Positions 43,001 to 61,000 of a DNA stretch of 64,000 bases are shown in pieces. The notes beneath the pieces are model-generated. The model was not told where the DNA came from. It was given only the letters and a program-made list of their open reading frames with translations, and did no database searches. The position numbers and the translations under genes are program-made. Source of the stretch: Lytechinus pictus (lineage: Eukaryota); the NCBI RefSeq assembly GCF_037042905.1, contig NC_087260.1, forward strand, positions 16,120,001 to 16,184,000, written 5' to 3'. Every line of letters starts with the position of its first letter. The stretch's first letter is position 1.

Positions 43001-46000
43001 GATTATAGTAAGAAAAAAATAAAGAATATTAACTATACAAAATAATAAAATATCTATTTGTTTATGCTACTGGGGCATCTGGCGATGTCTCCTCATTATA
43101 ACTCATGTTCCAGGGTTTTTTTTGGTGTAAATCCCTCAACGTTCATCGTGATGACAAATTGGAAGAGTAATACTAGTAATAGTACTATACATGCAAAACA
43201 AGGGAGATGAGAGGTAATTTCGTGGAGGTAACATGCGACAATGGAGCAATGCGATTGTATTTGCCCGCGGATTTTCATCTCACCGGAAGCATGTACCAAA
43301 TGACGTCATTTAAACACGTTTACGATCGTGGTTCTGTTTATACTTCCCCAGAAAGCCTGATTCCGGTCAAACAACGTTTACAAACGCACCTTTTTGTGAG
43401 TTTACGATCGGCGTTTTGAAACAGCGTTTAAATGAAAGTAAGCATGGACCCAACCGTGTTTTGGACTAATCACGTTTGGAAACGCTGATTCTGGCCTGAA
43501 AAGTGGAAGCATAAACACGGCCTTAGTTAGTATGTCTATAATTCTCTGTATTAGTTTTGTGGTCTAGTGGATATGACCCTGGACGATAGATAATAAGGTA
43601 CAGGGTTCCAATCTTGCTGTGGCAATTTTATCCTTTTGCATCCTTTTGATATTTAACAGCATCTGCAACACTCAACCTAGGTGAGGAAAATGGTAACCTG
43701 GCAGGAAGTTATTCCTTGAAGTTAAAAAAGCTATGCTATACCCAGAGTAACAACATTCAGTTTGCTGGTATTTCAGCATTTAAATTTTATCATTTCACAA
43801 CATTTTATGTTTGTAGACTTACTAGATCAAGTGGGTGTTTCATAAAGCTGTTTGTAAGTTACCAGCGACTTTATGAATGACTGGAGATCCTTTCTTGTGG
43901 TACATGAAACATGCCAGATTTCCATCCACGTTGATTAAGCGCCGAAGAAAGGATCACCAGTCATTCGTAAAGTCGATTGTAACTTAAGAACAGCTTTATG
44001 AAACACTCACCTGGTTTTACAATGATATGGTAACATTTGACCTTGATTTCATTTACTTTTTCTCGTTGAATAATTGCTGCAGCTACATCAGTTTAGCTTT
44101 AAAGAGATCTACTTCATTTTGGTCTGAGGGCATTGACTGGGACTGAAAGTGCTCCATTCCATTTTCAATATTTATCAGCTCTATGTTTTGAAAAACTTCA
44201 GACAAAGTTTGGCTTTCTGGAGAGATAAACTCTGCAGCTAGTTGCACAGGTGCACGTTCCAGGCTTCAGGATACTCATTAAAAGAAGTGTTAAATAGCCT
44301 CGTAATTTGCTGCGGGACAGAGAGGGATAACCTGAACCCCCGCTGACCCTTGACTTCCTGTAGCCATGATGGAGTTTGACGACAGGTGATTGCCTGGTGG
44401 AATCATTCTCCCCCCCTTCTAAAATATAATCAATGAAAATGATAACACACTGAACCAAAGGCACCATCGTCTTTATATTTATTTGTGAAGAGAATATTAG
44501 TCTATTATTACATCATTTGACTTCCGAACAGATCTCCCAAAGTATACATGTGTTGTGGCTTAGTGGACAGGTCTCCAGAACATGAACCATAAATTCCAGG
44601 TCCAAATCCCATCGCAGAACTCATGGCCTTTGGCAAGGTGTCAATTTGCCACTCTCCACCCAGGAGTATTAAATGAGTAACGGCTGGAAGGAATTCCTTG
44701 AATACCCAAGCACCTAATCAGGGCAGCCATGCTAAAGCTAGGGTAACAGTTTGCAATGCTTAGAAACATTGTATAAAGCGTTACTGCATATTATTATAGT
44801 TAACCCGCAATAATTCACAGTGGGAAAAAAATCAAACTTGCTTCTCTCAGAAATCTCTCTAAGTACACAAAACTGATTTATTTGAGAAAGCAAATGTCCA
44901 ACTCTACGCTCTGGAGTAAACACAACCTTATCACATTTAAAAAAAAAGGTCTGACTTGCACTAAAAAATGTTGTGTAATATTGGAACTACGAACATGGAT
45001 GTCGCAATTTGGATCTCGAGAGTGGGCAAGACTGTAATGAACAATGCAGCACAAATTTTAATGTCATTGACTTATAACAAAATATGTTAACGGGGCGGGT
45101 GGTAAATAAACCTTCCCTTACCGTGTTTACACGCTGCCCCGGCTCTTAGTGCAGATCTGTGAAACGGGCAAGACTCGCCTTTTTTTATGCGTGTAAACGC
45201 GATTAACTTGCCTCGGCTCGCGTAGCAAACATCTGTATTTTTGCCCTGCAAACCAAGTCTGATTCGAGAGCTGGGACAACCTGTAAACGCGATGCAGGAT
45301 AACCCACGAGCCGAGTCTGCACCGGCTCGCGGATCTGCACCACGAGTCAGGGCAGCGTGTAAACACGGTACCTGTCTTATCGGGGTTAAGATTTGACTTA
45401 CCGAAAGTAGATTACTCCTCCTGAGTTCTGGTAATGTTATTCTCCCTGTCCATGATCTGTTGATGGTGTAGAATATTCTCGATACAACCTGGAACAAAGA
45501 GAAATTGCCAATTTGTTAATTGGTCTAATTACCAAGGGCTGGTCTCATGAAGCTGTTTGTAAATTATGCACAATCACTTAAGGTCTCTCTGCCTTCTAAT
45601 GAGGCACATAGAAAAATTAAAGACAATTGATAACTTCATTATGCTTTGCATGTGTGTGGCTTTTTAACACTGTACTAGTAACTCATATCGGTTAAAGCTG
45701 GGGCTTCTAAATTAAAGCATACAAGTAACTATGCAAGGTTATAGATATGTTTCTATTTCACTATTGTTTTATTCTTGCCTATCATATTAAATATTTCAAT
45801 TAAAATTCTCACCAAATGTGGATAAAAAGAGCAAAGAACAACCCCCCAAAAAATCAGTGGTTAACATTAATATAACCATCTTTCCTATTAAATACAACAT
45901 ATCAGCAAAGCACATAATGTCAGAAGTGTCAAATATATATTCCATTTCTCCAAAATATTCCATTATCCAAAAGCAATGTTTAGTCTGGCACTGTGGATAT

Positions 46001-49000
46001 ATCTTAACCCACAACAATTGCGTATTTGTATTTTGAAAGTTATCAGCTCTCACAAACACTTAATAATAATCTTCACTCAGAAAGTCACGACAAGTCAGAA
46101 AAGTGCAAAATCTCCTATCATTTACACTTTTGCTGACCTGAATTTCACCCCATTATTTCTTTCTCAGTGCTAAAATGACCCAAACTGCTTTCCTTCTAGA
46201 CAGCTTCTAACAGCGTTCTTATTTCTCTCTCTTTCTCTTTTCCTACAACTCTTGCTTCTTGAGATTTCTTTTTCTCTGTTCGCTTTCTCCTCCCATCTAC
46301 ACTGTTAGAAAATTTATCCTTAAAGGACAAGTCCACCCCAACAAAACCTTGATTTGAATAAAAAGAGAAAAATCCAACAAGCATAACATTGAAAATTTCA
46401 TCAAAATCGGATGTAAAATAAGAAAGTTATGACATTTTAAAATTTTGCTTAATTTCACAAAACAGTTATATGCACATCCTGTTGGGTATGCAAATGAGTA
46501 GACTGATGACGTCATCCACTCATTATTTCTTTTGTATTTTATTATATATGATATACAGAATATTCTATTTTTCTCCTCATTGTCAAGTGAAACAACGATC
46601 AATTCCTCCCTGAACATATGAATGAGCATTTTTTTATACTATATGATTCAGTCAAGTTGGTCCTTATTGTCAAATCTGTAAAAAAAAAAAAAATAAGCAA
46701 AACTTTAAAGTGTCATAACTTTCTTATTTTACATCCGATTTTGATGAAATTTTCAGCGTTTTGATAGTTTGATTTTTCTCTATTTATTCAAACTAACATT
46801 TTTCTGGGGTGGACTTGACCTTTAAAATAAAAGAAGTTCCTGCAGCAGAGTCTTGAGAACACTTGTAATCTTACCAGATTGTGTAATCTTACAGGAAATT
46901 GGTATTTGGTGTATGGAATCTTACAAATTTCCTTCAATAAAACACCCTTTTTAAACACACCTGTTCTGTTAAATTGCAGAAAAATTCCTGTTTTATGAAT
47001 TTACAGAATGATTCTGTTATTGCTTTTTGCAAAATCTTTTTTTTTCCTGTAAAATCACGTTTTTTTAAACAGTGTACTCTCTCTTAACTCTTCAACTTTG
47101 AACTGCTCCAGTTATCTTTGTCTAGCTTAGTTTCTTTAACTCTTTCTCTAAAAAAACCCCCTCCTTTTTATAAACAGTATCAAATCTACATGTAGATATC
47201 TCTTTTTACTTGCAGCTACAGTGTATATAAATGTTACCATTTTCATTCTTTCTCTTTTCAAGGCTGGTGGGTGGGAGGGGGGAGGGGGGGGGTGCTCTCT
47301 GCATATCCTTTTTTACCACTTCTCTCATATGCTCCTATCATATGCTTTCATTGTGTCTATCCATCTCTTCTTCCCAAAACGATTGCTACCTATCTCTTTC
47401 TTTCTTTCTCCATCCCCCATTTGACCCTTTCCGTGTCCGTGGAAATTTTAATGCATCTTGTTCTGTTACTCCCAATCCCTCTTTACCTCCATCCCTCTCT
47501 CCCTCCACCCCCATCACCCTCAACCCCCATCGCCCTCCACCCCCTCTCACATACCCTCTCTATCCCTCATCCCCTCTCCCCTTTTACCCCTTCTATCTTT
47601 CCATCTCCTCTCCATAACCCCCTCTCCCTGACCCATGCCTCCTCCACCCATTTCCACCCCATCACCCTCAAGCCCCTCTCACTGCTTTAACCCTTCTATC
47701 TTTCCATCCCCTCTCCATATCCCTCCTCCCTGACCCATCTCTCTCTTCCATCCCAATACCCTCAACCACCTCTCACCTTTTACCCCTTCTCTCTCCAACC
47801 TCTCTCTTACTCATTCCCTCTCCCCTTTTACCCCTCTATCTTTCCATCCCCTCTCCATATCCCTCCTCCCTCACCCCTCTTTCTTTCCATCCATCTCTCC
47901 ATAACCCCCTCTCCCTGACCCATGCCTCCTCCACCCATTTCTCCTCATACCCTCCCCTTTTACCCCCTCTTTCTTTCCATCCCCTCTCCATATCCCTCCT
48001 CCTTGACCCATCTCTCTCCTCCACCCCATCACCCTCAACCACCTCTAACCTTTTACCCCTTCCCCCAACCTCTCTTCCTCATCCCCTCTCCCTATTACCC
48101 CCTCTATCTTTCCATCCCCTCTCCATATCCCTCCTCTCTGACCCATCTCTCTCCTCCACCCCTTCACCCTCATCCCCTTTAACCCCTCTATATTTCCATC
48201 CCTTTCTTCATAACCCCCTCGCCCTGATCCACCTAGTTCTCCTCATACCCTCCCCTTTCACCCCTCTGTCTCCCCCTCTCTCTAGCCCCATCACTTTCCT
48301 CCCTCATCCCTCTCCCTTCCCTCACCCTTCCACCCACAACACTCTCCTTCAATCCTTCCCTCTTACCCCTATCTCTCTCATACCACTTTCAATCTTAACC
48401 TCTTCTTGCTTATCTACCAAAATTGTTTTCATCAACATTTACAAAAGTTTTCTTGTTACCATAGCGACGTAAAAATAACTATGTACATATCTTCCGGCTA
48501 ATAACAAACTCTTTACACCCTACCTCCCCCATCCCCCACACTCCTTAGGCCAATGCTCCCCCAAGTGCCGCCCACGCTACGTCATCCATTGGTTCATAAA
48601 GTCAAGCGGGAGGAGTCATGTTGACTCTCAACCAATCAAATCCAAATGAACACGCATTCCTAAAAATACAACATTAAACCTAAACATTGATGAACAAAGT
48701 ACTTGGGAAGCTTGAAGAAGCAACCTGCAATCTGATTTTGATCCTCTTTTGCTGATTGTGAGCTGCTTAAACATTCACTCCGCTTTCATGAAATGATATT
48801 TGGAGACTTTTTAAAGAAATTCAGCAAGCACCAAGTACATTCAATATCGATCGAGGAAAGAGGAATATCAAATGGGGTAAGTGGTACACTGGTTTCCTCT
48901 GAACTGTCTCCTAATTCTTTATAATGAAGTTTGATTAATCTACTTTTGACGAAATTAAGTTGATGATACTGGAGTCGATGATGTGGAGCGTTGTGGCCCA

Positions 49001-52000
49001 GTGGATTAGTCTTCTGACTTAGAAACAGAAGGTCGTGGGTTTGAATCCCAGCCATGGTGTAATTCCCTTCAGCAAGAAATTTTTCCACATTGTGCTGCAC
49101 TCAACCCAGGTGAGGTGAATGGGTATCCGGCAGGATTAATTCCTTGAATGCACTGAGCGCTGAAAGGCAGCTCGAGCTAAAGCCGGGGTAATAATAATAA
49201 TAAACAATGCGCCTCGGAATAGAATAATTCTAGATAGATAGCGCTATATAAATGCCTATTATTATCATTATACTGTTATCTTGGGTATCAATCTGTCAAA
49301 ATCTTGGAACTTGCTAGTAATGCTGATTGTGACAACATGTAGTCTTAGGATAACTATATTCAAATTTTGAGCAAAACTGTTTACCTATTCAAGAATAGAA
49401 TATGAGTTCACAGTTCTCATATCACAAGGTATGATGGGTAAAATTTGAATACATTATGAAGCGAGCATTGATTGAAATATCCATGGTTGCACTATTAATT
49501 CTCGCACTTTGCTGATCATTACTCTTAAAATAGCACTCAAAATTATTGTAAGAATGCAGTAATACAAAGAATGAAAATAGTGATGTAAAACAGATCAAAG
49601 CAATAAATACAAATTTGATGATCGTCATAGTGAAGCACAAGTAGGAGATGACATTCAATAAAGTAACATTTCACATTCAATTTGAAAAAAAAATCAGGGT
49701 TACACTTGTTTATTTTTTCTCTGTTCATTCAAAGTAAGTTTGTAGTTGATTTGGCTTTAAAAATGACATTAATGAATTGAACACCATGTGTAATATGAAG
49801 AAGGGAAGGAAATACAGGCAGAAAATTTAAATGGAAAGACGAGATAGGATGAAAAGAGGAAATTAGAAGTATTCTTTTTTGAAAGTGAGTTAAGTCCTGA
49901 AAAGGACTGTAAACCAGATGAGGGGTTATTTTTTTAAAACTTATAAATGAGGGTTAATTTTTTAATTATTCTTCTTCCTAGGCCCCACTCTCCCCATCTT
50001 TATGATGGTCAAATATGCAGTTAAAGAGGGTAACTCAACTATGAGGAGATGTTGCATGCAGTGAATCTTCTGCCATAGGTTTATGCATGTTGGGATAGTC
50101 TTGCTACCGATACCCTTTCATTAAACAAACAGAAATATATTGTGTATTTTGGTTGATAATTTATTATTGCTTTCGATCCTTATTAAAAACAGGGATGTTT
50201 GGAAAAGTACTCTAAATATTTTGGTTTTGGGAGGAATATGGGTATTGTTGTAGGAATGGTGTTGGGATAAGAAAATTACTAATTGTTTAACTGGGTATAC
50301 ATCACAAGACTAAGTGATGAAATTGTTGAATCCTGGGTATGATCATGGACCTAGTAGGTCCATGATATGATCAAGGGTTTGTCAGAGTAGTTTATGTCTT
50401 GAGCTGGCATTGTTCAATCACTAAAGTGTGTGTGGTATCTTGGCTTTAAATGGGAAGCTCACCCTGACTTTATGTTGGTTTTAATAAACCAGAAAAATTG
50501 GAGAAAAATATTGGTCAATGTTTGATATAAAGCTATCACAGAATAAGAGATTTATGAATTTTCAAAGTTTTTAATTTGTGAGGTCATTTGCAAGCAGCCC
50601 CCCATATATCATGTAATATAATACCCCTTTCATAAACCCAATAAAACATATCCTCCAATTAGCCGCCTAAGAGTAATGCGGATAATTCAATAAAAATTGC
50701 GTTCACAAACTCCATAAATTATTTTCACGAGCGCCCGTCCTGAAAAAGGCGGATAATCGTCATGACAACTGGACACGCCCCCTCCAATGCGGTTGTGTTG
50801 GAAAAAGGTGACCTTGTGACCGCACCATGGCAATTATCCGCATTATTTGGAAATACGTTCATAAACTTCATAAACTTGTCCCGATGCCGCTATTATGCGG
50901 ATAATAGCAGCATCAGAATAATGCGGATAACTCTTGTCCTCCTCTGATTTTACGACCAAATTATGCTGCTATTAGCCGCATAATTGTGTTTTATTGGGTT
51001 TATGAAAGGGGTATTCATTCCATTCTTATTTCTTAATGGAAAATGATTAATTCAATATTTCTTATATAAGGGGGTATTAAATGATGAGCCTGATGATATA
51101 TCCACTACACAAATAATAACACTTCTAATTTTTATTATTATCTTGTTACTGAATGGTTTTAAGAGTTAGTAATAATTTCAATGCCAGAATTTTCTGATTC
51201 CCTACAGGACTCAGAGAAGTATTGCATTTCTTCTGCTTCTTCTTCTGTGCTGCGGAGTGGAACAGAACAATGCTATTCCAATCCCCGGACCCACAGCCCA
51301 AGAGTTCTACACAGAAACATACACAGAGGTTATAACTGAGACTGTGCCATCTTCTGAAACAGAGGGCGCTACACAAGAAAGACAGCAGAGGCCATTGACT
51401 GGTACAGCTGGAGAAGTGAGTATTTCAGGGGAACTTTTCATGAAAGGCTGTGCCAAGTGTTGAATTTCATTTTCTTTGTTACATACTCAATGAAATAATG
51501 ACAACCTCTTGAAGGTCAAATCCACCCCAGAAAAATGTTGATTTTAATCAATAGACAAAAATTGAACAAGCATAACACTGAAAATTTCATCAAAATCGGA
51601 TGCAAAATCAGACATTTTTAAGTGTTGAATTTCATTTTCTTTGTTACATACTCAATGAAATAATGACAACCTCTTGAAGGTCAAATCCACCCCAGAAAAA
51701 TGTTGATTTTAATCAATAGACAAAAATTGAACAAGCATAACACCGAAAATTTCATCAAAATCGGATGCAAAATCAGACATTTTAAAGTTTCGGTTATTTT
51801 TCACATAACAATTATATGCACAACTCAGTGACATGTTAATGAGAGACTCGATGATGTCTCTCACTCATTATTTATCTTTTTTTGTCATTGTTTGAATTAT
51901 TTCAATTTTACAGATTTGACATTAAGGACCAAGTTAACTGAACCATCTAATGTTATGCCACATGTTCAGGGAGGAATAGAACTTTGTTTCAGAGGACAAT

Positions 52001-55000
52001 GAAAAGAATATTACAATATTTCATAATTAAATACGAAAGAAAAGTGAGTGTGTGATGTTGTTAGTCTCCTCATTTACATACCGATCAGGGTGTGCATCTA
52101 ACTGTTTTGTGAAATTAAGTGGAATCTAATCAGTCATGTCATAACTTTCTTATTTTACATCAGATTTTGATGAAGTTTTCTGTGTTATGCTTGTCAGATA
52201 TTATTCTTTTTGTTCAAATCAACATTTTGTTCTGGTGGACTTGTCCTTTAAAAATAGAGTTTCTAAAATATTTTAGTTCAAGCAGGTAGATTTTTATTGT
52301 CATAATTATTAAAATTACTTTAAGACTATAACATTACATCAGTCTTGTTTAAAATAAAAATCCTTGAACTTTGTATGTGTAATATTTAGTACTGTCAAGA
52401 CATCCCAGAAGAAACAGAGATCAATCTTGTGCAAATTTCTTTCAAACAAGCATTTTAGATGTTCCCGTGGCTTTTTGTAAGACGGGGCCCCAGTATATGG
52501 AATAAAATTGGGATGGTGCTTCAGGGCACTTGTATATTTTCACTTTTTGAAGCATTGAATATTCATACAGGAAAAATAACCTTTGACTGCTTTCAGCACT
52601 GGAATAGCACCATCTTTGCTGGTGATTGCATATCATGCCATTTTTCCATTCAAAAAAATTGTGGCATTTTTTTTTTAATTTTGCCTTTCATGTAAACCAC
52701 AAAAAACACCCCTTTCATAGTATTATAATGGAATTAAAACATTTCACTTTCAAAAGCTGCTGTCTAAAAACATTTCAAAACTTTTAGCAAATTGGGAAGA
52801 AAATAATCAAAAGGACTTGTACATGTAGTATAAAAATTAACATTATTTGCAGACTTGTAGAAAAAACAGTGCATATAAATTAATGATAACCTGTTTTTTT
52901 AAGTCTATAATTTTCACTTTTTCTTTGCATTATTTAGCCACCCATTGAGACTGTAAAAAATGAAAGCCAACAGATTATCGACACTGGGGATAGTATCACC
53001 TTACACCAAACTGATACACTCAGAGCCAACACCAGTAACACAGCATTGCCTGAATCCAACACCACATCAGGTGAAAGTGAGGACTCGGAACATGCAGCTG
53101 CAGTTGTTGGCGGTGTTAACACTATGGCTGCAAGCACTGGATCTACACCCCATGTCATGCCTAATAACACCATTTTCAGTCCTGTTAGCACTGGTTCAGC
53201 ACAAAGCACCTTGGGGAATACACCTCCAACTACATCACTTTATTTGACAACGACTACAGCTGAACAACCACCAAGTCATCATAAAAAGTCCACTGAAAAT
53301 GATATCACAATATCGTATGTGACAGAAATTTATACAGAAATTATTGACAGGACAGAACTTGTGGTGTCTGACACCGATTCCAAGGATGTAGCTGCAGTTC
53401 ATGAAGGAGTTAACACTACAGCTACAAGCACCAGATCTGCATCACAAGGTAGTACAAGTAGTGAGGATGGGAGATCACATGATGTTTTAAACCAAGATGA
53501 AGACTCTGAAACATCTCCATCAGCTCATCTTTCAACAACTAGCACTTTACACCACACACCTCCAACTACAGCTCATCATTCAACAGCTAGCACTTTACAC
53601 CATACACCTCCAACTACAGCTCATCATTTGACACTGATTACAACTGATCAGCCAACAAGCCGTCACGAAAAGCCCAGTGAAAATGAAGAAACAGTATCTA
53701 TTGAACCATATGTGACAGAAATTTATACCGAAATTATTGACAGGACAGAACTTGTGGTATCTGACACCAATTCCAAGGATGCAGCTGCAGTTCATGATGG
53801 TGTTAACACTACAGCTACAAGCACCAGATCTGCACTAAAAGGTAGTGCAAGTAATGAGGATGGGAGATCACATGATGTTTTAAACCAAGATGAAGACTCT
53901 GCAACACCTCCATCATCTCATCATTCAACAACTAGCACTTTACACCATACACCTCCAACTATAGCTCATCATTTGACACTGATTACTGCTAATCAGCCAA
54001 CAAGCCGTCATGAAAAGCCTAGTGAAAATGAAGCCACAGTATCCACTGAACCATATGTGACAGAAATTTATACAGAAATTATTGACATGACAGAACTTGT
54101 GGTGTCTGACACCGATTCCAAGGATCTAGCTGCAGCTCATGAAGGAGTTAACACTACAGCTACAAGCACCAGATCTTCACTACAAGGTAGTGCCAGTAGT
54201 GAGGATGGGAGATTGCATCATGTTTTAGACCAAGATGAAGACTCTGCAACATCTCCATCAGCTCATCATTCAACACCTGGAAATTTACACCATACACTTC
54301 CAACTACAACTCATCATTCAACAGCTAGCACTTTACACCATACACCCTCAACCACATCTCACTTGACACCAAGTACAACTGGACAAACAACAAGCCGTCA
54401 GGAAAAGCCTACTGAAACTGAAGTCACAGTATCCACTGAACCTTATGTGACAGAAATTTATACAGAAATTATTGAAAGGACTGAACTTGTGGGGTCTGAT
54501 ACGGATTCCAAATCTGATCAAATCGTTTCAACTGAAGATGAGGAAGATTCTGAGCAAGCGGACAACACGGCTGATATGTCTCAAGACCTGGCAAACATTA
54601 CTCCACCTATAAGCAGAACTACTCCACACGACACTGATCAAAGCACCATCCTATCAATCTCTTACTCCAGAACTGAGCCACTCATCTTTGCAGACAGGGT
54701 GGTCATGACACCACCTTACACCGGATCAAGTCCAAACATGACAGCTCCTCAAATTACCAGCACCAGTTTTACACCAGACAGTCAAAATCTTACACCAACA
54801 CCAGCTGATCCTTCTTCACCAATATCTGATGTAACACCAGAGAATGGGGCAAGCACCAAAAGTGCATATGTATCTCCTGTAACTAGTTCTGCTGCACCTC
54901 CTGAACCAGAGGTGACAGAAATTTACACAGAAATAATGGAAATCACAGAACTAGTTATGTCTGAAGCTGAATCTGTTGATACCCCCTCAATACAAGAATT

Positions 55001-58000
55001 GGAGCAAAGAGATTCTGCCCAAAGTAGCTCCAGTTCAAGGTCAGATATTTCAAGTCCCGAAGAGATTTCTCCAACTCCAGTGTTAAGTCCAAATATTACA
55101 CCACAGCAGGAACATACAACATCTGAATGGTCTGAAAATACACCTGACCCATCTGAAATCACTGATAGTGAAACAGAGGAATATGAAATTAATGTATATC
55201 AGTATGAGAGTGTACGAGACGAGTCTGATGGAACACCAGAGCAGTATGATAGTACACCAGATCAGTCTGATAGTACACCAGATCAGTCTGATAGTACACC
55301 AGATCAGTCTGATAGTACACCAGATCAGTACAATAGTACACCGGAGCAGTATGACATTACACCGGATCAGTCTCCAAGTACACCAGAGCAGTATGATATT
55401 ATACCGGATCAGTCTGCTAATACACCAGATCAGTATGATAGTACACCAGATCAGTCTGCTAGTACACCGGAACAGTATGATATTACACCAGAGCAGTATG
55501 ATATTACACCGGATCAGTCTGCTAGAACACCAGATCAGTATGATAGTACACCAGATCAGTATGATAGTACACCGGAGCAGTATGATATTACACCAGATCA
55601 GTCTGCTAGTACACAGGAACAGTATTATAATACACCGGAGCAGTATGATATTACACCTGATCAGTCTGCTAGTGCACTGGAACAGTATGATAGTACACCA
55701 GATAAGTCTGAGAGTACTCCAGATCAGTATGATAGCACATCACAGCAGGAGCATGTTAAAAACAGTTTATCTTCTGCATCATATGTCACTGAGACCTACA
55801 CAGAAATCGTGGAAATTACCGAGATTTCAATACCTGACACTAAACCTGAGACACAATCAAAGGAAAGTATCTTACATGAGTCATCACTATCAGAAGTAAC
55901 AAGCAAACCTATGCCTTCGACAGAAGGTTATCGTACGGAAGACAGTGACTCAACTCAACAAGGTACTAGATCATCACCAGTCGGTTCAAGCAATATTGCA
56001 AAGACGAATACAGTTCAACCTGATGCCGCTTACACCTTTAGTCCACCTTCACAAAATGCCAGTGCCATACAACCTGGCCCAAACTCTACCACTGATGCTT
56101 CTGCACCTACAGAGCATTCAGTTGCTTCAACAATTACATATTCAACACTAACAGAACCCCAGGCTCAACAGCCTGCGACTTCATTGGATAGACCAAATTC
56201 AGCAACTGCTTTGCAGGATGAAATGCCTCAGGGTGACCAACTGGATGATACAGAACCATCATCAGAACCCTTTATTATGGAAGTCAACACAGAAGTGATA
56301 GAATATACCGAACTTGTGATGGCTGACTCTGATGGAGAGTCTGATTACAATCCTGTAGACTCAGACGATGAGGGTTCCGTGTTGAGAGATGCCAACGCCA
56401 ATGACGGGGTGGATAGTGGCGACGCACCGGGTTCTGATGAAAGTCAGATCAAGGAACCCGAAGGTGTTGCATCTGCTGATAACAGTTCTACCACGCAGAG
56501 GTCTGCTTCCACAGTGGATACCTCTGATTGGACAACAAACAGCTCTGACTCTGCATCACACATTCCTGTGTACGCGATGGACCGAGTTGATTACGTACTA
56601 GACAATTCTTATTCAATATCAGAGAGTCTTGAGTATACATTACACAGTAACGATTACAGTCTGGACAGTTCAACACCAGACAGCTCTGATTCCTTACAGG
56701 GCAGTTCTGAATTGACACCAGACAGTTCTGATTCTACACCAGGCAGCCCAGATTCCATACTAAGCAGTTCTGATTCGATAACAAACAGTTCTGATTCTAC
56801 ACCAGGCAGCTCTGATTCCATACTGGGCAGTTCTAATTTAACACCAGACAGTTCTGATTCTACACCAGTCAGCTCTGATTCCAAACTGGGCAGTTCTGAT
56901 TCCACACGAGACAGTTCTGATTCTACACCAGGCAGCTCAGCTTCCTTACCAGACAGTTCTGATTCCACACGAGACAGTTCTGATTCTACACCAGGCAGCT
57001 CTGATTCCATACTGGGCAGTTCTAATTCGACGCCAGACAGTTCTGATTCTGCACCAGGCAGCTCAGCTTCCTTACCAGACAGTTCTGATTCCACACAAGA
57101 CAGTTCTGATTCTACATCAGGCAGCTCTTATTCCATACTGGGCAGTTCTAATTCGACACTAGGAAGTTCTGATTCCACACTAGGCAGCTCATCTTCCTTA
57201 CCAGACAGTTCTGATTCGATGGTGGATATCGTTTATTACATGGACAGTTCCGACTCTATATTGAATAGTTCTGATATTATAGTAGAAATCTCTGATTCTA
57301 TATCAGATAGGGATGATTATACACCAGATAGTTTTGATAATACAATGAACACTTCGGATTCTTCACAAGACAGTGGTGATTCTACACTAGTTAGTTCATC
57401 TTCCACACAAGACAGCAAAGATTATACACTGGACACGTCTTATTTTACACTAGATATTTCTAGTATGAATAGTTCTGATTATACACTTGGCAGTGTCAGT
57501 TTGACACAAGACAGTCCAGATTATTCACTGGACAGTCCTGATTATACACCAGAAAATTCTGATTACACACTGGATAGTGCTGAGGCTACACCAGACAGTC
57601 CTAGTTATACACCTAATGATGTTGACTCTACACCAGACAATCGTGAAGCAACACCAGACCGTCCCAATTACACACTCAACGGTGCTGGAGACACATCAGA
57701 TAGTCCTGATTATACTACACGGGCTAGTCCACAGTCCACACCAGCCAGTGTCAATTCTGCTTCGAACACCCCCAGTGCTACACTAAATGACACTGTTGAC
57801 CCTTCAACAACAGCAGAATCTGCACTTCAGGAACCAAGTCAATTGAATAAAACAGTAAGTAATACGGCTCTCACAGAGACCCCTGTTAGTGATGACATCA
57901 CCTCTCCCCAAGACTCAAGTTTGACTGAAACTTACACAGAAACCGTGGAAATTACAGAGCTGTTCATAGGTGATGAAAATGACTGAAAATCTTTCAACTT

Positions 58001-61000
58001 TGTGTACCAAAACACAAGTTCCACTGGGGTGACTGATATACTTTGAACTCTCTCTACCAAAACGGAAGTTCCATCGGTCATGCACAGAATATCACCCCCT
58101 CCCCCAAAACCATTTTGACTGAAACTTACAATGAAGCCATGGAAATTACAGAACTGAAGATAGGTGAAAGAAAAAGACAAAGCTTTCTTCATCAAAAACA
58201 GTGCTTCAATTGGTCCTGCAAAGACTATTATAGCAAGAGGTGAAACTTATTGTTTGATAGGACCAAAGATGGTCAAAAGCTGCTGTATGTTGTCAAGAAT
58301 TCTGTGCTATTTTAAGATAATGTTTCTGTGCAGGTATCATCACAATCACTGCAGGGTTGACCGAACCTTGAACATGTGTCTTCAAAATGTAATATATTGG
58401 GAAAGTGTAAAAACATGGCTCTTTATTTGTAGAGAACTACGAAAGTGCAAAGTAATCACTTTCCTATTCAGCAAATTCAGTATTTTCATGACTATATTTC
58501 TGTAGCGCATGATGAAAAATGTCCACACACCAAATTTGTAGACTATCAGTTCATGCTGGCTCAAGGATGGCCACATAAATACCCAATGGCCTCATTCAAA
58601 TCAGATCAGGAAATTGGCCTAGTTCATAACTGTTTGAATCTGCTATGTTTTTAACAAAGCTGTTCATAAATTAGGAGCAATTTTACAGTCAGTCGGCAGG
58701 TCCCAAGAAAGTGGCTTCTTTCATCCAAGTGATATTCATGACTAGAGAGGTTTTGCATATTTAATGAGCTTGATGCGGACCAAAACACCTCTTTTCATTC
58801 GGTCATTGCTGCTCTAATTGGGCATCGAATTTCATGATTTTGGTATCATTGTAAAGGAGAAGAATCATTCTTTTAGGTCATGTGTTTGCATTTATTCAAA
58901 GATTTTGTAATATAGATTAAAATTTTGATCTAAAATATGCTACAAAATAATTATTTTCACCTGACAAAAGCTGCTATTTTTACACTTTATCTTTGTTTGA
59001 GCCCAAATTATTTTTAGATCATCATAAAGCTGAATATGTATGCTTTAAAATGGTATAGGTTTCAAAACAAGAATACTGCACTCTGATTGGTCAAAGAGAC
59101 CACACACTGGCAAATTCCAACGGTTCCAGTGCCTGGGTTCATGGGAAGGTCACACTTCCCATGTGGTAATCTCCTCAAATTACCTGCTCCTGTTGTTTTG
59201 TGAACCTTATCCAGCCAATCAGAACTCTGGATTTCATGCAAGTACAAAATTTCAGAAATCTCGTCTTGTACCTTGGTGGGAAAAGTGTGATCTTGACCCG
59301 ATTAAAAGGTGCCGCATATCAAGAGTGGCATTGTGAGAAAGTACAGAAGTTAAGCTTTATGGTGATATATATCATTGAGGCTCAAAATAAAAAGTTTTGC
59401 ACAATTTGCAAAAGAAAACAGAGGAAGAAAATTCAGTTGTGAGGCACATTTTCAGGCCAGAAATTCACTTATTTATCAAAATATTGTATACAAAATAAAT
59501 GACCAATATGAAAGAGTAACATTTACTCTATCTGATGGTGCAATGATATTTCATTTGACTTGAGGTTAAATCAGGTAAATTCTTAGAGAAAGAAAATATC
59601 ACGAATCACAAGATTTTGCAAGAAGGATTCAGCCACGAGATGATTTGGATGAATCTGGCCTTTTTGCTCATTAGCATAGGGGCCTGCGGTCTGACTGTTT
59701 ACAAACAACTGGTGATCCTTTCTTAAGGTAAGATTATGCACACCAAGTTTTCATTGGTGTGGATTTAGCTCCTAAGAAAGGATCATCAGTCATTTGTTAA
59801 GTTGCTCGTATCTTACGAAAAGCTTTATGAAACACACACCAGGTGCAATTTGCACTGATTTCAACGAGGCTAGGTATTCATAAGACCACATCTCTGACCC
59901 TACAAGCCAATTCTCACAATATTTGGGCTGCGGACGTTTCTCTATCATGTTGAATCGCAAATAATTTCTTATTTTTCATTTCATCACTTCAGAACAGTAT
60001 CCATTTTGATAAGGTGCTTCCTGGCATTATGACCAAGTGGTGATCAGTAACAAATTATTCTCCACCACCACCATTTGTGATAGATAACATATTTTATTCT
60101 CTTTATTGGCAGTATCTTGATGTATAATATGTCTCAATGCAATAATAATGCACCGCATTACAAATGATCTAAGCCATGCCCAGTTGCCCCGTGTCATAAG
60201 AAACTTCGTCATACATTAAAATGTCAACAACAAAAAAAATCACAATTTTGGCACTCCATATACTCCCACTTCTTAAACTCATGAACAACTTGAAATGTAC
60301 ATTATAGAATGCCCGAGGGTAGAGAACCACTTTTTTCAGATATATATTTATACTTACTGTTGTTATATATCTTGAGTGAAACTCGGGGGCATCCTGTAAA
60401 AACGTTAAGCCAGGATGAGAATCAACTATATCCTGGAAAAAAAAGAAGAAAGAAATGGTTAAAGAGAAAAATACTTCTGAAAAGATTTCTGGTTTAAGTA
60501 TCAAATTGAATACCTGCCCAGGGCTCTGCTACACAACGATTTGCAATCAATCACTAAATGGCAATGACCAATCAAATTCATTGTTCTATGTGCCTTAGGT
60601 TCTAAACACTGGCCAGGACCCAATCAACAATGATCTTTCATATTTATGGTCAATCACAAACCTTTGTGTTACGGGGCCTTTAACTAAATGAAAGGCACCT
60701 TACCAAGAGTCAGAGCTTAGTCTTTTCCACAGGAATCCTGTCAGGCATCTTTTCATGGCTAATTCTCACATTTTATCAGAGACAAAATAATTGGGGAATC
60801 TGGAAAATATGCAGGGAAAGATGCTTTGTGCCTTTATAGTGAAATTCCTGCCAAAAGACAAGTCATAGGATCTTGGTAAGGTGCCTTGAAATCAAATCTT
60901 CTGGGCTCTGTCTTACAAAGACTTACGATTGATCCGATTAACCACAACTATAGGAGGCCAGCAACGCCAACATCCAGAATGCATGTTTGTTCAATATGTT

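Follow-up and report, generated by a model that had tools for sequence, protein, structure and literature searches.

A recurrent, conserved and probably helical 16-residue motif in an acidic, mucin-like protein predicted from sea-urchin DNA

The window analyzed here, a stretch of 64,000 nucleotides from the sea urchin Lytechinus pictus (assembly GCF_037042905.1, contig NC_087260.1, positions 16,120,001 to 16,184,000 of the forward strand), contains a plus-strand gene of three exons, with canonical GT-AG splice sites and a signal-peptide-like N-terminus, whose product carries nine copies of a short, selectively conserved and probably helical motif between disordered acidic blocks. The coding part of exon 1 (48872-48876) consists of ATGGG followed by a gtaagt donor, and supplies Met and two bases of codon 2; it was located by reading the sequence, and agrees with the MGT start of XP_011678194.1, a predicted protein of Strongylocentrotus purpuratus. 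Exon 2 (51208-51415), bordered by the acceptor ccctacag (cag/G) and the donor GAA/gtgagt, encodes the rest of the signal peptide, the first motif copy and a conserved ERQQRPLTG, and was matched by residues 3-79 of the S. purpuratus protein with 58% identity in a tblastn search. Exon 3 (52938-57986), which follows the acceptor ttatttag/CC, stays in an uninterrupted frame for 1682 codons up to a TGA stop, can be aligned to the same protein by tblastn, and contains all other motif copies together with the disordered acidic blocks. The joined product of the three exons is a protein of 1753 amino acids including the signal peptide. On these sequence grounds, the gene is real, consists of three exons and has so far been seen in sea urchins only; it is probably an unannotated one.

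A six-frame scan of the window revealed the motif on the plus strand only, in nine coding copies. Copy A (51305-51346; residues 35-48 of 1753) is a 14-residue variant lacking positions 11-12 of the other copies, and has counterparts in XP_011678194.1 and in the Logan contig L011 described below. The copies in exon 3 are B1 (53316-53363), B2 (53709-53756), B3 (54054-54101), B4 (54444-54491), C (54909-54956), D (55782-55829), E (56271-56318) and F (57918-57965); B1-B4 were also covered by codon comparison and C, D and E by interspecies alignment, and B3, B4 and C were each predicted to be helical. Copy F (residues 1732-1747) ends six residues ahead of the stop codon and has an orthologous C-terminal copy in XP_011678194.1, and the copies lie 115-550 residues apart with one at each end of the chain. 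The core follows the pattern phi-V-T-E-phi-Y-T-E-phi-phi-E-x-T-E-L-V. Little or no variation is seen at the Tyr, at the Thr in every one of the three TE pairs, or at the Glu in the first and second of these pairs. The 16-residue core is usually preceded by EP and followed by an acidic Ser-rich tail (e.g., M-S-D-T-D-S; SDTDS, SEAES), forming an extended island of about 24 residues. Shuffling of the protein 2000 times gave a mean motif count of 0.0005 and a maximum of 1, compared with the nine observed, ruling out chance.

The four B copies are members of a recent tandem array with units of 345-393 nt; Tandem Repeats Finder (TRF) reported the 345-nt unit, a His/Thr/Pro-rich spacer plus the motif, at 53569-54318 on the plus strand with period 345 and 90% matches. 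Their motif codons differ at only 0-3 of 48 bases, and alignment of the unit proteins showed that their His-rich spacers are alike. Because B1-B4 are recent duplicates, they are not independent, and the evidence rests on about six classes (A, B, C, D, E and F). The original prediction, which was made from the letters of the window alone, had counted nine copies, and the six-frame scan recovered all of them letter for letter and at the same places, including those near both ends of the mature chain; its description of the spacers as unrelated held among the roughly six classes and failed within B1-B4.

Comparison of the copy profile with the whole 812-Mb genome in six frames produced matches at ten places alone, the nine coding copies and a decayed tenth copy (58112-58159, plus strand; 28 bits, E 0.0015) in the presumed 3′ untranslated region, about 125 nt past the stop. 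This tenth copy arose as a duplicate of the final ~100 nt of the coding region with copy F, and lies ~195 nt downstream of it. It retains 76% column identity and has lost both the conserved Thr of YTE and the flanks, and is a natural control showing that an untranslated copy drifts.

The mature chain of ~1735 residues is strongly acidic (pI 4.05, net charge about -248) and free of Cys, with a composition of 18.6% Ser, 14.2% Thr, 10% Asp and 8% Pro. It contains 26 N-x-S/T sequons, 65 S-x-E/D sites and 70 S-x-S sites, and 41 of its 59 Tyr residues are in acidic surroundings without basic residues. The protein is predicted to be secreted and presumably O-glycosylated; it may be phosphorylated on the S-x-E/D and SSDS sites, and sulfation of Tyr is possible. 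No transmembrane segment was detected, the highest 19-residue hydropathy beyond the signal peptide being 0.71 here and 0.97 in S. purpuratus, and the chain contains no RGD. Two arrays of about 26 heptads each occupy fixed places between motif copies, both on the plus strand. The heptads TP[DE]Q[YS]D[SI] (55198-55739; TRF period 21) lie between copies C and D, and XP_011678194.1 has the same block in the same place; the heptads [TL][PG][DG]SSDS (56669-57219; TRF periods 21 and 63), composed of 35% Ser and 18% Asp, lie between copies E and F and are also present in XP_011678194.1.

XP_011678194.1, an uncharacterised predicted protein of 1411 amino acids named "mucin-12-like", is the orthologue. 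The signal peptide, the N-terminus, the order of the blocks and the order of the motif classes are common to both proteins, and the S. purpuratus sequence reads signal peptide, A, a His-rich block with two B copies, a unique Pro/Thr/Ser block, C, TPEQYDI heptads, D, a unique block, E, DSSDS heptads and F. Every motif class has a positional counterpart, including the one at the extreme C-terminus. The two proteins differ in length (1411 and 1753 residues), in the number of copies (seven and nine, corresponding to two and four B units) and in their spacers, which are 47% identical or unalignable. Two strongylocentrotid genomic contigs from Logan, L011:1-1490 (SRR28370579) and L012:1-1489 (SRR28370573), contain exon 2 and the start of exon 3, separated by an intron 2 of ~720 nt compared with the 1522 nt found here. 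The alignment to the strongylocentrotid sequence has a gap where the window carries copy B1 and the stretch around it, so species differ in how many B units they have. Neither the exon-2 peptide nor the motif-C region retrieved any homologous protein, a search of the ESM Atlas gave no usable match, and full-text searches by accession, name, motif peptides and general terms retrieved no publication on XP_011678194.1 or on this protein. A second conserved island outside the motif was noted at window positions 54700-54760 (residues ~660-675), with EPFDFADRMAMTPYD as its S. purpuratus counterpart.

Pfam scans of the whole exon-3 product, of three pieces of it and of the orthologue gave noise only and no described domain. 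The candidates considered were Cdh1_DBD_1, which reached 29 bits when summed over the whole protein with no single stretch passing and all of it on predicted helix, and TPR_CAND1 and DUF4214, which stayed below the cut-off, again on predicted helix and with no stretch passing alone. The motif profile had 0 matches at E <= 10 among all sequences of the Protein Data Bank (PDB), and matched five proteins among 1.84 billion protein representatives. One of these was XP_011678194.1, matched in 7 stretches with an E value of 8e-91, and the second was a piece of this gene, 96 residues long, in genomic sequence of a strongylocentrotid; the other three (P0002, P0004, which comes from an oyster and has repeats of STEMYTEAVGGQSW, and P0005) were set aside as chance matches to sequence of low complexity. 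The oyster match indicates that the library includes RefSeq invertebrate proteins, and within its coverage of echinoderms the gene can be called restricted to echinoids only provisionally. The motif had been proposed to be novel, and the comparisons with Pfam and the PDB agreed with this, as did the profile search of the protein representatives, in which no further true carrier appeared beside the orthologue and its fragment.

Analysis of interspecies identity revealed that 81 of the 111 motif columns (73%) were identical between the two species, compared with 571 of the 1204 other aligned columns (47%; Fisher p = 3e-7), and that a further 405 non-motif residues could not be aligned. A 16-residue stretch of copy C and its tail was identical to S. 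purpuratus at 16 of 16 positions, and the best 16-column windows between the species were either motif copies or the trivially alignable heptads. The remaining protein diverges fast, with proportions of synonymous (pS) and nonsynonymous (pN) differences of 0.36 and 0.19 in exon 2 and of 0.51 and 0.36 at the start of exon 3, and the introns are unalignable. Among classes B1, C, D, E and F, the first, second and third codon positions were identical at 71, 80 and 45%, respectively, and the upstream flanks at 29-39%; 39 of the 91 identical residues were encoded by different codons. A pooled Nei-Gojobori estimate gave pS 0.61 and pN 0.27 for these classes, with a corrected omega of ~0.27, in which the pairs are not independent. 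The retention of the amino acids while third codon positions diverged points to selection on the peptide, rather than to gene conversion or nucleotide constraint, and judging from these sequence comparisons the motif peptide is under purifying selection. Selection on the motif itself, as originally claimed, was thus supported between species as well as among classes, amino-acid conservation among the copies exceeding that at the DNA level.

The whole motif gene lies antisense within a ~14.8-kb intron of a protein phosphatase 2A (PP2A) B″ (PPP2R3-type) gene, between two minus-strand exons that match positions 53-85 (45393-45491; 36.1 bits, above the Pfam cut-off) and positions 25-59 (60340-60444; 36.4 bits) of the EF-hand_13 profile. 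The motif might have no function of its own, its copies being remnants of an old repeat unit that gene conversion has kept similar, or being held by a DNA- or RNA-level constraint tied to the host intron. The near identity of B1-B4, which follows from their recent duplication, fits this explanation. However, conversion or nucleotide constraint would keep all three codon positions, and in the older classes only 45% of third positions are identical and pS reaches 0.61 while the amino acids are kept; in addition, the same classes recur in the same positions in a species with introns that cannot be aligned, and the untranslated tenth copy has decayed at a conserved Thr and lost its flanks. This explanation is largely refuted, and we regard it as very improbable.

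Some features of the surrounding noncoding sequence were also noted. Intron 2 contains a 165-bp unit present twice with 98% identity (51455-51788), and in the genomic run that matches the gene the contig depths over the stretch 51350-52350 added up to 2,800-36,800, compared with ~6 for exon 3; this depth indicates that the stretch, which has many loose ends and joints, is a piece of a very high-copy repeat family. Upstream of the gene, the window shows strong strand asymmetry between 46000 and 49000, with a GC skew of -0.50 in the interval 46-48 kb that weakens to -0.24 at 48-50 kb, and pyrimidine-rich low-complexity sequence at 47.2-48.2 kb gives rise to long plus-strand open reading frames rich in Pro, Ser and Leu. 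A CT-rich simple repeat just 5′ of exon 1 probably accounts for the sequence at 47.2-48.2 kb.

Within the core, hydrophobic pairs alternate with polar pairs with a period of 4, which is the pattern of an amphipathic helix rather than strand. Hydrophobic residues occupy 0-180 degrees of a helical wheel, and Glu 4, 8, 11 and 14 together with Thr 3 and 7 occupy 200-340 degrees; the predicted helix would thus present Tyr, Ile, Val and Leu on one face and Glu at i, i+4, i+7 and i+10 with Thr on the other. The hydrophobic moment was maximal at 80-110 degrees per residue and unremarkable at 170 degrees (rank 258-1542 of 1738 windows), and in both species the copies were among the most hydrophobic 16-residue windows, signal peptide aside. 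AlphaFold2, when given a 16-row alignment of the motif, predicted one helix at residues 3-30 with a mean pLDDT of 79 and of 92 in the best 10-residue block. For a natural segment of 331 residues submitted without an alignment, it drew no secondary structure except helices at residues 13-58, 143-165 and 301-320, which correspond to copies B3, B4 and C; the means of pLDDT over 10-residue blocks ranged from 52 to 65 at the copies and mostly stayed under 50 in the rest of the segment. A complex prediction with four copies of the 32-residue motif segment gave a score of 0.01 against a mark of 0.32, and carries no weight either way. Taken together, these models suggest that the motif probably folds as an amphipathic α-helix flanked by disorder.

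Several points weigh against this helix and the model built on it below. AlphaFold2 is biased in that short isolated peptides are often drawn as helical, and its confidence in the natural context was just moderate; ESMFold2 gave a pLDDT of only ~30 for the motif 32-mer. Thr, Ile, Val and Tyr carry high β propensity, and an invariant Thr is unusual in a plain amphipathic helix. The comparison covers two or three sea-urchin species only, and in the sole sequencing run matching exon 3 the contigs continue across the intron/exon-3 border without a joint, meaning that the run is genomic DNA and provides no RNA support for the gene. The association step of the model is putative, and we infer the tissue and the function of the protein from its sequence.

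The original prediction had taken the motif to be a β-prone "sticker" for self-assembly. On this reading, the copies would be strands that assemble by cross-β stacking, or that dock onto a partner by strand addition in the manner of the disordered fibronectin-binding repeats of bacterial adhesins. Such a reading accords with the richness of the core in β-branched and aromatic residues (Thr, Ile, Val and Tyr), of which three Thr and the Tyr show little or no variation, with the standing of the copies as hydrophobic islands within a disordered chain, and with the lack of a confident helix from ESMFold2. On the other hand, the pairwise periodicity yields no amphipathic strand, the moment at 170 degrees is unremarkable, helices appeared in both AlphaFold2 runs, and four Glu per 16 residues oppose β aggregation at neutral pH. 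We therefore do not favor a β-prone motif, and consider a β sticker unlikely, although a β form remains compatible with the composition; in the models at hand, the helical reading is better supported.

With the copies read as helices, the protein may be a secreted, Cys-free, acidic mucin- or phosphoprotein-like chain that uses the amphipathic helices as contact points, an interpretation that we adopt tentatively and rate at somewhat below an even chance. In this model, a disordered polyanionic chain would carry about nine sticky helical islands in a sticker-and-spacer layout. The helices would be its only sticky elements, and their multivalent contacts, helix with helix or helix with partner, would tie the chains into a network. 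Since one face of the helix is a stripe of Glu, folding and association would be favored once Ca2+ or acid neutralizes it, and both steps would come to depend on charge neutralization by Ca2+ or low pH. The sticker-and-spacer idea of the original prediction is in this way retained, with helices in place of cross-β, and with the same slightly-less-than-even expectation. A more specific version, in which the motif is a Cys-free cross-linking module of a new kind for extracellular polyanions, its Glu-striped helix being unfolded when charged and snapping into helix-helix contacts on exposure to Ca2+ or acid, so that a mucin-like protein specific to sea urchins could form a gel, a coacervate or a mineral coat as needed, is speculative and in our estimate unlikely.

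The same Glu stripe could instead serve a mineral. The motif would then be the mineral-binding helix of a skeletal matrix protein, its Glu residues binding Ca2+ on calcite faces or amorphous CaCO3 in the way that osteocalcin binds apatite through its Gla helix, with the Ser/Asp-rich blocks acting like phosphophoryn. The extreme acidity of the chain, the DSS-like SSDS heptads with their high content of Ser and Asp, the 65 S-x-E/D sites and the position of the Glu residues on one helical face are in line with such a role, and sea-urchin mineral matrices hold acidic, disordered, lineage-specific phosphoproteins (PMC2830187). No peptide of the orthologue, however, is among the test and tooth phosphoproteins in the main text of that study (PMC2830187), a negative that is limited in that a protein with many modifications and few Lys and Arg residues might evade tryptic proteomics, and there is no sequence relation to phosphodontin with its repeat EISSGEGEQPK as given there. 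The half of the helix that is hydrophobic would, moreover, be superfluous for contact with mineral, and we consider this role quite unlikely.

Alternatively, the motif could be a recognition site within the secretory route, for a Golgi kinase, a glycosyl- or sulfotransferase, a sorting receptor, the granule membrane or a protease that cuts the chain. Copies are spread along the chain as far as its two ends, an acidic Ser-rich tail comes after every one of them, and the acidic, base-free contexts of the 41 of 59 Tyr resemble sulfation sites. A Glu-rich amphipathic helix at the C-terminus would, by analogy, also resemble granule-sorting helices. Neither the L. pictus protein nor its S. purpuratus orthologue has a furin site or a conserved dibasic site, and processing by a protease, one of the roles originally proposed, was rejected because conserved basic sites are absent in both species. 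The motif is, furthermore, found in no other gene of the genome, which would be odd for a general enzyme-docking signal; overall, we hold a recognition role to be distinctly improbable.

Large polyanions that are secreted and disordered, among them mucins, caseins and the phosphoproteins of mineral matrices, occur widely, but only in a few cases is it understood how they are built into materials. The layout found here is a very clean one, in which one short, strongly selected and probably helical module is placed between four compositionally distinct disordered blocks and is kept across two urchins while the spacers drift. If the helices are switchable contacts, the motif would provide a compact and easily synthesized sticker for study and materials design, and an unannotated, lineage-restricted urchin gene would gain a function. 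If the gene merely encodes a fast-evolving mucin-like protein with a binding motif, the value would be modest, consisting of a corrected gene model and a new motif definition. The significance would be greater if the Ca2+/pH switch holds, or if urchin mucus, adhesive, egg coat or mineral is found to contain the protein as a main constituent.

Among known systems, the gel-forming mucins (MUC2, MUC5AC/B) resemble this protein in that small modules interrupt long disordered repeats. Their CysD modules are foldable and partly hydrophobic, lie amid disordered repeats that are O-glycosylated, and presumably provide non-covalent cross-links. CysD domains are, however, ~110 residues long and rich in Cys, whereas the modules here have 16-24 residues within a Cys-free mature chain, and there is no homology between them; no VWD, CysD or cystine-knot domain of the gel-forming mucins was present, as judged from Pfam and from the 0 Cys of the mature chain. 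Human MUC12, the source of the automatic name, has Ser/Thr/Pro-rich tandem repeats in common with the urchin protein (seen here in its Ser, Thr and Pro content and in the heptad arrays detected by TRF), but MUC12 is a membrane mucin whose transmembrane helix, SEA domain and EGF domains have no counterpart here according to Pfam and hydropathy, so the name "mucin-12-like" is owed to composition only. At the level of the single module, the synthetic GALA peptide and the C-terminal sorting helices of granule enzymes such as carboxypeptidase E likewise have a hydrophobic face opposite Glu spaced i, i+4, so their folding should depend on neutralization of the Glu. These are single, membrane-acting helices without the invariant Thr and Tyr, in contrast to the nine copies in an extracellular polyanion described here, and the likeness is one of resemblance only.

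The second group of comparable proteins comprises DSPP/phosphophoryn, DMP1 and phosphodontin, with which the urchin protein shares a signal peptide, a pI of ~4, disorder, short Ser/Asp repeats, restriction to a lineage and fast evolution (PMC2830187). The SSDS heptads resemble the DSS repeats of phosphophoryn. SIBLING/SCPP proteins have clusters of S-x-E and S-x-pS kinase sites in an acidic disordered chain; the urchin chain offers 65 S-x-[ED] and 70 S-x-S putative sites at pI 4.05. Membership of the SIBLING/SCPP group was not indicated, the chain having no RGD and the sequence searches having found the urchin orthologue only. Phosphodontin, which has an Asp-rich C-terminus and a repeat of the type EISSGEGEQPK in 35 copies (PMC2830187), was rejected as the identity of the protein, given that neither it nor its orthologue has a repeat of this type and that phosphodontin, as presented there, is without the motif. 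The other test and tooth phosphoproteins in the main text of the same study (PMC2830187) are unrelated, with no phosphopeptide from the orthologue among those reported. By analogy with both groups, the protein would function most like the CysD-bearing mucins or the acidic matrix phosphoproteins, while belonging to neither.

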